Shown here: positions 16,550 to 19,390 of the stretch, piece after piece
Layout of the letters: the number at the start of each line of letters is the position of its first letter
How positions within the stretch are numbered: the first letter of the stretch is position 1
Assembly (NCBI GenBank): GCA_021613535.1
Contig: CP075492.1
Span: forward strand, 4,960,001-5,024,000
DNA from: Adineta vaga
Taxonomy: Eukaryota; Animalia; Rotifera
Length of the DNA stretch: 64,000 nucleotides
Reading direction: 5' to 3'
Made by a program: the position numbers and the translations under genes
Notes under the pieces: generated by a model
Databases searched by the model: none
What the model was told of the DNA's origin: nothing
Seen by the model: only the letters and a program-made list of their open reading frames with translations

Positions 16550-16763
16550 TCATTCTGCAGCTGTATCGACCGAACGTTTAGCCGGTTGTGCATCTTGAAT
16601 TCGCATCAATAATGGACGTACTCGACTACCTCCTCCCCAACGTGCTTCACTTGCAAGAATAAAAGCCAAAAAAGTCAATACAGTTAAGATTTGTGCAAAG
16701 AACCTAGAGAAAATAATATAAAATAGGTCAGAATCATTTCATTCAGTAATATATTTACTTCAT
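16550..16763 (-). CDS. 52-aa secreted peptide precursor (not in ORF track)
   Basis: Exon 16763-16759 (ATGAA), intron 16758-16704 (GTAAAT..CTAG), exon 16703-16550 give MKFFAQILTVLTFLAFILASEA-RWGGGSRVRPLLMRIQDAQPA-KR-SVDTAAE*. Probable 5'UTR intron at ~16799-16859 and TATA-like run at ~16902-16914. Confidence 0.75.
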
Positions 16764-17312
16764 ATTGAATCGATTGATAATGATGGATGTTGAGTACCTT
16801 AATCAGAATCAAACGCAATAGAAAACTCGTTTTTGTTTTTCCAAAGAAAGCATTCTTACTTGTTTCGTTAAAGGATGAAAATGTCGATCACCGATCCATC
16901 AATATATATATATACCTGTATATGGTTACTAGAAAAACTATTTAGTATGCATCACTTGATGGTATTGTTTCAAATTATTATACACATTATTTCTATAGAA
17001 TTTATGATACGTATAGATAAAGGTCTCGAGTTTTAAGATGAAAATACTTGATCCAAAACCGGTTATGTAGAGCAAAAAAGTACGTGTTTTCAAATTTATT
17101 GAGTCAAAAATGATTGGAGAAAATATATTCATTCATTTTTAATTCAAGAGAACACTTATTGCGCATTTAAAATGAATAATTAAGAGAATACATAGAATAA
17201 ATATGGATAAGATTGCAAATGTATTCATATGTGACTTTTGAGAGGAAATCAAATCTAGAAAGAAAACTATTCTATCAAAATTGGCCCTCCAGTACTTTTT
17301 GATTTTGCAGCA

Positions 17313-19390
17313 ATGGCAAGTTTTCGGATGATACATATTTCTATATATTTATTCATCATTGGTCGATGTCAATCAGAAAATCTATTCGAACTACCGATTA
17401 ATATTGAACGATATCGAAACTTTCATTTTGCAGGAAATGAAGAACCAGTTAAGAATGATTTTTATGCAAGTATTCAATCAATCAACAATCGATTGGGATC
17501 TTCTACATCAGACATGTATCTTTTGGCAAATGAAGTAGTACTAATTCGAAATGCTCTCTCCGAAAATGAACAGAAATCATTATTCAATTCATTGGTGTCA
17601 TCAATTCCCAAAGCATTATCATCTGTTCAAGTGGATGAGGGTCTCTGTCCCGATGGTAAATGTACTCTGCATACCTGGAAATTAAATGAAACACTAAATG
17701 AGTTAAATTCAAAGAGAATTCAAACAGTAGGAGAAGGAATGTATTCAAAAGCTGCATCATTTCTTCAAATACAACAAACAATACGTACCAAAAATACTAT
17801 TGATAAATCTCTTCATTGTCCACCAATTCATCAGAGACCATCATTCAAATATGTTCATGGGGTAATGTACGATATCAATGATTCACTTGGTTTTCATCAT
17901 GATAAAACCTGGTCAGCACATCAGAACTCCTCATACGAATGGGTAATCTCCATTTCTCTTGGACATTCAGCTGTTTTCAGATATCGAAAGGACGAAAAAG
18001 AAGCAACGACTGAAATCGTTCTCAATTCAGGAGACGTACTTTTCTTTAATGGTGCCGCTTTAGAACATGCAATGCCTTATATTCTGAAAGATAAGTATCC
18101 AATATGGTGGACTAGTGTTGATACATCTCAAAAGGCACGTTTAAATATACAATACCGAGTATTAGGTGAAGAAGATTTTCAACAACAAAATACAGATGTA
18201 ATTCGTAGTTCTACTCGATCTTTAAATTCGGAGATGGATAGAAATCGAATCGTACACTGTGCTGCATCTGTAACAACACTCGGAGACAACAAATTTCTCA
18301 CCGGTAAGATAAAATTAACAGCAAACAGGTAAAGAAAAATCCCGCCTTTATAGAATCTCATGGAAACACCGTCTCTTTTGGCGCAGCGTGGATGAAGCGA
18401 ATTTTTGATCTCGCACAGCCAACTGAAGCTGAAGTAAGTCGAATGAAGATCATATTACAGTAGAGTAAAGGTAAATATATTTGATCTTCTAGAAATCAAC
18501 TAGTATGTCTTCTCACATAAATGTTACTGGATTTGGAACAATTTTACGTAACTACTGGCCATTTACGTTGCATGAACATTTAAATAATCAACGCTTAGCG
18601 ATCCTAGGGATGCGTGGATTGAATACTCAATTGCCTAACGATAATGGGTTGTTAAAAAAACTCTTTTACGAATGTCTATTGGAAATTCAAAAATTACCAA
18701 TATCTGTTGAAGCCAATGGCATTGTAATGAGTTTTTTAGATCCTAATTTGATTATTTCACTTCATATAGCTGGTGTTTTACAAAATCCAGCTGATTTTGA
18801 CAGTACTTTTTCATCCAAAGAAATCATTGATATAAAACAATTAGTATCTCAAGCAATGACATTGATTAATGAGACGGATGCAGAACTCTATCTTTGTATT
18901 ATGCAATCCGTGACAACATTAGCTTTTTATAAATATGTTGATCCTGGTTATATTGGTGGAACAATTTCGTCGATTATTGGAGTGATTTGGCTTGATCCAA
19001 GTAATAAGGAAATGGACAGTAGAAATGATGGCCGAACAAATCGTTCATGAATTTATTCATACTTCATTGTTTATTAATGAACTCGTTCATACATCGTACT
19101 CTGATTATAATCTTCTTGAAGTAGCTCTCGTAAAATCAGCCATTCGTCAACAGATGCGAAATTATGATAAATCATTTCATGCTGCACATGTAGCAACTGG
19201 ATTAGTCGCTTTTCTAAGCAAAGCTGGTTACATCCAACGTGCAACAGATCTGGTGGCGAATTTACGATCATCGATCGCTGATTTAGAAACTGTTTCTATC
19301 CATACAGGTGTTCTTTCTACCAGTGGTCGAACAGTGTTACAAGCTCTTCAAAATTTTTTCTACGAGGGTGTAAGACGAAGCAATGCTTGA
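17313..19390 (+). CDS. Three-exon fusion (~655 aa after correcting one indel): signal peptide + AlkB-like 2OG-Fe(II) oxygenase + linker peptide + aKG-HExxH-type peptide hydroxylase domain
   Basis: Exons 17313-18303, 18354-18433, 18493-19390; introns of 50 and 59 nt (GTAAGA..TAG, GTAAGT..TAG) keep frame. 2OG domain: GFHHD, VISISLG, LNSGDVLFFNG, EH, RLNIQYR. HExxH domain: GGTISSIIGVIWL, AEQIVHEFIH, VKSAIR..RNYDKSFHA. One extra base near 19008 splits the last exon. Confidence 0.75.

Follow-up and report, generated by a model that had tools for sequence, protein, structure and literature searches.

The window considered here, a stretch of 64,000 nucleotides (nt) of Adineta vaga DNA, carries a three-exon gene (17313-19390) for a double oxygenase in which an AlkB-like 2-oxoglutarate (2OG)-Fe(II) domain is followed by an α-ketoglutarate (aKG)-HExxH hydroxylase module. 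The linker that joins the two enzymes had been read, from the letters of the DNA alone, as a captured precursor peptide with AAWMKRIF as its ancestral core; this original prediction is partly confirmed in what it observed and partly supported in how it was interpreted. The HExxH module belongs to a eukaryotic family which, on sequence comparison, is a bacterial-type precursor fused to its HExxH enzyme. The best explanation, whose chances we put at about even, is that the linker represents the collapsed remnant of a core array in such a fused protein, that a conserved island within it docks on the HExxH domain, and that the core of a neighbouring gene product, P0163, would be the substrate in trans.

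According to this proposal, a bacterial-type precursor and its aKG-HExxH hydroxylase would have been joined into one polypeptide, here a secreted double oxygenase. The family order would be signal peptide, leader of the form N-I-x-x-Y-x-x-x-H-F, a 2OG domain inserted in some members, one or several cores, and the HExxH enzyme. Since the cores precede the HExxH enzyme in this order, the linker lies at the place of the cores, and it may be what is left of an array that counts 24-40 units in the nearest 2OG-bearing relatives. Three pieces would remain: a tether that is disordered and evolves fast, the residues DNKFL closing exon 1 as the possible stump of the first unit, and a constrained amphipathic island in exon 2, which would dock on the HExxH domain and resembles a core without having the core Met. 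The likely working substrate would be the core RPLLMRIQDAQPA-KR, encoded by the divergently transcribed P0163 gene about 550 bp upstream, whose peptide would come together with the enzyme along the secretory pathway and undergo hydroxylation in trans.

The gene is organized as follows.

17313-19390 (+): double-oxygenase gene with three exons, from the open reading frame (ORF), splice sites and orthologue introns
17313..18164 (+): exon 1 up to the end of the 2OG domain, with signal peptide, leader-like motif and AlkB-like 2OG-Fe(II) domain
about 17313-17375 (+): predicted signal peptide in exon 1
17400-17429 (aa 30-39) (+): leader-like motif NIERYRNFHF, from a bacterial-precursor hidden Markov model (HMM) and a strict leader pattern
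about 17535-18158 (+): AlkB-like 2OG-Fe(II) domain (PF13532)
18165-18303 (+): exon-1 tail of 46 aa after the 2OG domain, from the domain boundary
18234..18303 (+): final 23 codons of exon 1, MDRNRIVHCAASVTTLGDNKFLT, within the 46-aa tail; first half of the linker
18304..18353 (+): intron 1, 50 nt, GT..AG, phase 1 (donor GGTAAG; acceptor AG 18352-18353)
18354..18433 (+): exon 2, 80 nt, (E)SHGNTVSFGAAWMKRIFDLAQPTEAE, with the island and a core-like heptad inside
18368-18418 (+): conserved island TVSFGAAWMKRIFDLAQ in exon 2, from comparison with the orthologue L005
18389-18409 (+): core-like heptad WMKRIFD in exon 2, from a core matrix
18434..18492 (+): intron 2, 59 nt, GT..AG, phase 0 (donor 18434; acceptor 18491-18492)
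18493..19390 (+): exon 3, aKG-HExxH hydroxylase module (TIGR04267; HExxH 19046-19060; stop 19388-19390)

The orthologous metagenome loci L005, L006 and L007 have both introns, GT/AG ends included, and the three-exon model is therefore sound. The gene was analysed exon by exon. Its domains are 78-81% identical to those of the orthologous metagenome contigs L005, L006, L007 and L003. Exon 1 matches PF13532 (2OG-FeII_Oxy_2) over aa 75-282 (E 6e-15), and the iron triad His-x-Asp...His together with the 2OG-binding Arg (H195, D197, H252, R276, R282) is invariant in the family alignment. The TIGR04267 aKG-HExxH model recognizes the last 132 codons, a piece that lies past a break in the reading frame (see below), with 47.1 bits against a cut-off of 40; an intact orthologue reaches 54.6 bits, with model positions 3-175 matched by aa 120-284 of exon 3. 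The expected residues are present as VHEFIH and ...IRQQMRNYDKSFHAAHV, that is, HExxH plus downstream Arg, Asp and His, and these columns are invariant or nearly so in an alignment of 124 sequences. A genome-wide scan located the TIGR04267-type HExxH gene at a single place in the 100.8-Mb genome, with no second copy found.

The extent of the linker follows from the two enzymes. The 2OG model ends at ...LNIQYRVL (18164), residue 1 of the bacterial Ectobacillus protein P0033 falls at about residue 14 of exon 3, and the many bacterial-type proteins, about 280 aa in length, align colinearly with exon 3 only. Therefore, about 90 residues lie outside both enzymes: the exon-1 tail of 46 aa, all of exon 2, and the opening dozen residues of exon 3.

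What occupies this place in related proteins carries most of the argument. A profile of the HExxH module was searched against 1.84 billion representative proteins and gave 580 matches, the best of which outside rotifers are eukaryotic proteins with long N-terminal additions. Tandem peptide repeats stand directly before the HExxH module in 10 of the 20 top matches. Named members include proteins of Mercenaria (P0010, P0018) and Haliotis (P0013, P0016), and the repeat units are the following.

P0010 (Mercenaria): VRMKISDALLIDE..REKRKSAGP
P0018 (Mercenaria): FSMKLSDADDSDDN, about 20 copies
P0025 (eukaryotic): SMKLIDVSTPTTN..
P0013 and P0016 (Haliotis): other repeats
P0023 and P0014: ..MMYS.. and QMMRHS.., in that order
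P0006 and P0009: YLMRVQDKP and WLMRVEDKP, in that order

The core form in the eukaryotic family can be written x-x-M-[KR]-hydrophobic-x-D. Lys-Arg or Arg-Arg sites separate the repeats of P0010, P0013, P0014, P0016 and P0023. Proteins of molluscs that are filed as 'uncharacterized' (P0010, P0018, P0013, P0016, and P0014 from L051) combine tandem repeats with a C-terminal HExxH hydroxylase. All 19 eukaryote-like members of a 126-sequence tree group together in a single clade (Shimodaira-Hasegawa-like approximate likelihood ratio test, SH-aLRT, 99) among the bacterial sequences. The predicted structure of P0009 has a predicted local distance difference test (pLDDT) value of 90-98 in the enzyme domain, and its best structural match is the crystal structure of the HExxH oxygenase domain of ChlBH (8s5f, E 4e-9).

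The closest parallel to the window gene is P0007, a protein of 1300 aa encoded by one intronless ORF on a 402-kb contig (L008:4001-7903). Its order is signal peptide, AlkB-like 2OG domain, DNRWLMRVEDKPSTDP units, some 75-85 aa of spacer, and HExxH module; this is the domain order of the window gene, except that the place of the linker is taken by a repeat array of the WLMRVED type (38 units by match, about 40 by period). P0007, P0154, P0161 and L011:20-1384 are all intronless and carry the 2OG domain, then 24-40 WLMRVEDKP-type units, then the HExxH module. P0161 mixes two unit types, QPYRMRVEDKPSTTAG and ADNSWLMRVEDKPS. Intron positions shared with molluscs were considered and rejected: the Haliotis gene is intronless and the P0014 gene (GCA_026914265.1, 63-Mb chromosome) has one intron elsewhere, so that the exon boundaries of the window gene are young.

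On the bacterial side, the original prediction had stated that HExxH enzymes are encoded beside small precursors, and inspection of the closest bacterial homologues bears this out. At thirteen of the closest loci a small ORF of 29-91 aa lies directly upstream of the HExxH gene; these loci belong mostly to Bacillota, and one is the Bacillus phage SPbetaL1. The precursors share a leader, N-I-x-x-[YF]-x-x-x-[HY]-[FL], and a core, [PL]-L-[RK]-M-[QK]-I-H, which is at times repeated: the Ectobacillus precursor has three tandem cores (SPSLLKMQIHDTEDV) and that of Cohnella has two. An analogy with triceptides and their aromatic-X-X cores fails on the neighbourhoods inspected, and the bacterial cores read L-[RK]-M-Q-I-H. 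The gene calls of L017, the closest bacterial relative for which neighbouring genes are listed, comprise only precursor, HExxH enzyme and MFS transporter, with no radical SAM or MNIO partner. The phage locus L019 lists hypothetical proteins only, without an annotated radical SAM gene, and none was seen next to the gene of the window. At the remaining bacterial loci, the scan of the 1.5-kb flanks covered small upstream ORFs only. An SPbeta-like phage carries the precursor and HExxH pair (L019:2295-3379, Bacillus phage SPbetaL1), and the Ectobacillus pair (L017/L020) adjoins a Tn3-type transposase, an integrase and a ParE toxin gene; the pair therefore occurs on mobile DNA in bacteria.

The bacterial leader can be traced into the eukaryotic proteins. 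With an HMM built on the bacterial precursors, seven scoring family sequences and exon 1 of the window outrank every other of the 1904 stop-to-stop segments of the window; exon 1 obtains E 0.036 at NIERYRNFHFAGNEEP, and the best decoy 0.3. P0010 scores via its cores (E 8e-5), P0023, P0007 and P0154 via the leader, and P0008 via a single leader-plus-core at bacterial spacing, HIQSYMKTHF..12 aa..PLRMMALQ. The leader of the Exiguobacterium precursor (..SNIERYIKHYL..) matches the NIERYRNFHF of the window. A strict leader pattern, which gave 3 decoys in 128,000 six-frame window positions, is found directly after the signal peptide in the window gene, L005, P0007/P0154/P0161, P0012 and P0023, hence in at least four lineages, and looser forms occur in P0008, P0016 and P0020. 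Leader and core motifs of bacterial precursors thus recur in the eukaryotic proteins, which argues for a family that is precursor fused to enzyme. To this extent the suggested collapse of an operon into a precursor-enzyme polyprotein is upheld for the eukaryotic family, but not in the form proposed, as the leader of the window gene stands at the N-terminus, before the 2OG domain, and not in the linker. In 2OG-bearing members, the 2OG domain is placed between the leader and the cores.

The linker itself divides into segments of unlike character. The exon-1 tail is predicted to be disordered, with pLDDT about 25 and without secondary structure. Its identity to the orthologue is 39-50%, it differs by a 10-codon indel at its end and by smaller ones (13 gap columns in all), and it has accumulated nonsynonymous substitutions (dN 0.41 vs 0.10-0.13 in the domains) three to four times faster. 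The ratio of nonsynonymous to synonymous substitution rates (dN/dS) is 0.09-0.14 in the domains, 0.27 in the exon-1 tail, 0.66 in exon 2 and 0.21 in the island. The tail can still be aligned with the spacer that precedes the array in P0007, P0154 and P0161, with a shared Cys and an invariant Asn as anchors, and its end (..LGDNKFLT) comes to lie over the first unit (..NLDNRWLMK) of the same three proteins.

Within exon 2, a 17-residue island of the form TVSFGxxWMxRIFDLxQ stands out (TVSFGAAWMKRIFDLAQ in the window vs TVSFGTSWMNRIFDLVQ in L005, 13/17 identical). Its dN of 0.14 is near the level of the catalytic domains, and four of its codons differ synonymously only. The Trp of the island precedes the motif [FY]W[PC]F (YWPF) by 35 aa in the window and by 39 aa in L005. 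A single-copy, non-repeated Trp element occurs 37-39 aa before the same point in 5 of the 6 P0007-type relatives examined and 29 aa before it in the sixth, P0009; examples are ETVEWLPLIHK, ENLSWLPLVKD and EPISWIPLLKD. In the model of P0009 the Trp element has a pLDDT of about 72, with surroundings below 50. The island is probably the counterpart of this enzyme-proximal Trp element and a docking segment for the HExxH domain, and may itself be derived from a core unit. The linker would then mark the place of a lost core array and keep one constrained element.

Resemblance to cores was scored with an ungapped matrix made from 17 lineage-balanced units, without the window sequence, and applied to 82,397 7-mers of the window. 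A matrix was used because HMM searches are weak on short motifs: even LLMRIQD, the core of the neighbouring gene, goes unscored by the HMM of a near-identical unit. The heptad WMKRIFD ranks 148 of 82,397 (top 0.18%), and in L005 none of the protein's 652 in-frame 7-mers scores higher than the corresponding WMNRIFD. When the 20-90 7-mers of exon 2 or of the linker are allowed for, WMKRIFD has p about 0.04-0.16 and is weakly core-like. The Met found in 16/17 matrix units is Lys in the window heptad and Asn in L005; Met-less variant units do occur in P0018, P0025 and L035.

These results bear directly on the cis model of the original prediction, in which AAWMKRIF(D) would be a working single-copy core, hydroxylated by the domain or domains of its own polypeptide in the manner of burpitides or borosins. 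The segment does sit at the core position of the family architecture, and the ancestral core that had been proposed is to that extent well placed; W-x-x-R-[IV]-x-D is in register with WLMRVED of P0007, P0154 offers WLKRVED as a natural variant unit (z 2.1-2.5, p 0.02-0.03), the heptad has the high ranks just given in the window and in L005, and the island is under constraint. However, it has lost the core Met, its p value becomes about 0.04-0.16 once the number of linker 7-mers is taken into account, it is flanked by no conserved release sites, and the internal Lys-Arg is Asn-Arg in L005. Moreover, a far better core is found in the neighbouring gene, and the position of the Trp is that of the single-copy element in relatives whose true cores lie elsewhere. 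Self-modification in cis is possible; as an account of the linker, the cis model appears unlikely.

The P0163 gene and the parts of it relevant to the proposed trans substrate are:

16550..16763 (-): P0163 gene, two exons, for a 52-aa secreted peptide (annotated protein)
16763-16759 (-): P0163 exon 1
16758-16704 (-): P0163 intron
16703-16550 (-): P0163 exon 2

Its product, MKFFAQILTVLTFLAFILASEA/RWGGGSRVRPLLMRIQDAQPAKRSVDTAAE, consists of a signal peptide, one canonical core, and then a Lys-Arg site. The core LLMRIQD (16612-16592, -) ranks first of the 82,397 window 7-mers and is comparable with YLMRVQDKP, WLMRVEDKP and the bacterial PLRMQIH. The start of P0163 lies about 550 bp from that of the oxygenase gene, head to head. 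A DNA pattern for LMR[IV][EQ]D has 15 matches in the 100.8-Mb genome; of the others among them, 8 were examined and have no peptide-gene context; the chance of one match within 1 kb of the only HExxH gene is ~3e-4, for a pattern that was widened to Ile post hoc. Exon 2 of the oxygenase gene was also considered as a duplicate of the neighbouring peptide and this was rejected (protein p 0.06, DNA p 0.08).

Between the two genes, a tiny open frame (..FKMKILDPKPVM*, 17032-17070, +) contains FKMKILD, the third-best core-like heptad of the 64 kb; PKP comes next, much as KP ends the unit WLMRVEDKP. A decayed core unit and an upstream ORF are possible readings of this frame, as is chance. Downstream of the orthologous oxygenase gene, a large gene for a URGCP/GVIN-type GTPase is found on the other strand (L005:4001-9019 (-), L006:2963-7348 (-)).

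Several findings weigh against the proposed remnant, its docking and its trans substrate. The constraint on the island is seen in two diverged rotifer lineages only, and 13/17 identities within a 45%-identical region have p ~0.1 by a binomial estimate; a metagenome scan gave 8 loci, none of which crosses a further rotifer linker. Exon 2 is at chance level against HMMs of the bacterial core, a broad core, the P0007-type repeat unit, the mollusc pre-domain region and the post-array spacer, searches that are weak on 7-17 residues. Docking is drawn from a confidence value in the model of a relative, not from contacts. As for P0163, a counterpart was not recognisable in the 290 nt of L005 between the conserved ATGAAGTAAAT and the contig end, a word search of the protein collection found no homologue, and the peptide is without a leader motif. 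Finally, the HExxH domain of the window lacks an uninterrupted reading frame in the assembly.

Some of these points would fit a plainer account, in which the linker is an ordinary flexible tether followed by an N-terminal helix of the eukaryotic HExxH module, without any link to a precursor and with a core resemblance due to chance. The chance-level scores of exon 2 with core, unit and pre-domain profiles, its comparison with the neighbouring peptide (p of about 0.06), and the mostly disordered and fast-evolving nature of the linker are what such a tether would show. It leaves aside, however, that a precursor leader motif is kept at the N-terminus of the protein, and that the nearest 2OG-bearing relatives carry a core array exactly here, behind a pre-array spacer that can be aligned with its Cys and Asp-Asn anchors. 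Given an array at the same place and an alignable spacer, a precursor-derived origin is the simpler history, and we regard the plain tether as improbable.

The break in exon 3, which the original prediction missed, raises the question of whether the gene still functions. Relative to the orthologue L003, 2 nt are deleted between 19012 and 19013 (GGAAA[AG]TGG); with the frame unbroken, the letters at this site would read GGAAAAGTGG. The frame that enters from the linker consequently stops at 19048-19050, inside the HExxH codons 19046-19060, which are read in the other frame. Protein alignments of the other intact orthologues run through this site without a break in frame. If the deletion is real, the gene could be a recent pseudogene, and the linker would have no present function in this genome, whatever its earlier role. 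The end of the upstream frame at 19050 and the lack of a second copy in the genome are in keeping with this. Past the break, however, dN/dS is 0.09 and every catalytic residue is intact, so that the break must be very recent or an assembly error, and a 2-nt fault in an A-rich run is plausible as the latter. A pseudogene seems quite unlikely.

Two further features had been taken as signs of a captured ORF with its enzyme. The peptide strings reported for the linker are exact: the ATG at 18234 opens ...MDRNRIVHCAASVTTLGDNKFLT, and exon 2 encodes (E)SHGNTVSFGAAWMKRIFDLAQPTEAE. The two internal Met codons exist as well, at 18234 and at 18505, the latter 12 nt from the start of exon 3. As neither is conserved, with Ala-Ser replacing the first and Thr the second in the orthologue, a reading as relic starts is rejected. 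The middle exon is indeed richer in GC in the window, at 47.5% where 80-nt windows taken from the remaining exons have 34.8 +/- 4.5% (top 0.2%); the corresponding values in L005 are 38.0% vs 38.5 and 38.2%. As the excess is absent in L005, it is no conserved mark of separate origin, and it was rejected as a sign of foreign origin. Neither the Met codons nor the GC content favours a captured ORF.

Ribosomal peptides tailored by bacterial-type enzymes are found in bacteria, fungi and plants. The leader and core of a bacterial precursor, traceable into animal proteins, would add a rare apparent case of joint transfer and fusion of enzyme and substrate. A broader scenario can be put forward tentatively and is more doubtful than not: spiralian animals (rotifers, bivalves, gastropods) and other eukaryotes would have inherited a whole bacterial ribosomal-peptide pathway by one transfer, with precursor and aKG-HExxH hydroxylase welded into one secreted protein and the core later amplified to as many as 40 units. 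In the rotifer the system would then have been re-split into a 'leader on the enzyme, core in trans' arrangement, with the leader motif still at the N-terminus of the enzyme protein, a leaderless core in a separate small gene under a shared divergent promoter, and the island as a tethered pseudo-substrate. For clams, the predicted hydroxylated peptides would include x-M-K-[IL]-S-D, and for this rotifer LLMRIQD. A limited search found no literature linking HExxH hydroxylases to animals, which is no proof of absence.

Among known systems, the substrates of bacterial aKG-HExxH enzymes are ribosomal peptides with a leader, in which Asp, His, Gln, Asn or Pro becomes hydroxylated (PMC12636437, PMC13060819); the cluster treated in the nitrilobacillin paper (PMC13060819) is another HExxH cluster and not the present bacterial subfamily. 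The bacterial hydroxylases (TIGR04267 / IPR026337; ChlBH, BpmH, PflC/PosC, PesO) and the window gene are alike in the model match, the HExxH motif and the Arg/Asp/His residues, and the predicted fold of the homologue P0009 matches PDB 8s5f. The window gene differs in being an animal gene with introns and a predicted signal peptide, in which the hydroxylase is fused behind an AlkB-like 2OG domain.

Animal neuropeptide polyproteins and fungal Kex2-processed repeats, such as the ustiloxin precursor, resemble the Lys-Arg/Arg-Arg-separated repeats of molluscs and the Lys-Arg of P0163, but they are not fused to a modifying enzyme and have no bacterial leader motif. Borosins, in which a precursor is fused to an N-methyltransferase, likewise unite enzyme and substrate in one polypeptide. 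Their core is single and C-terminal to the enzyme, whereas the cores of the present family are N-terminal and often highly repeated, and the chain of the window gene is without a clear core. In the fused precursors of plant burpitides, core repeats stand N-terminal to a BURP-domain cyclase in one secreted polypeptide, and split versions exist. The same logic is found in P0007, P0010, P0018 and further members, with signal peptide, tandem cores and enzyme in one chain, and the enzyme protein of the window with its separate small core gene resembles the split form. The two systems are unrelated in enzyme fold and metal, copper BURP on one side and Fe/2OG HExxH on the other, and differ in the bacterial origin of the present family, which has kept a recognisable bacterial leader.

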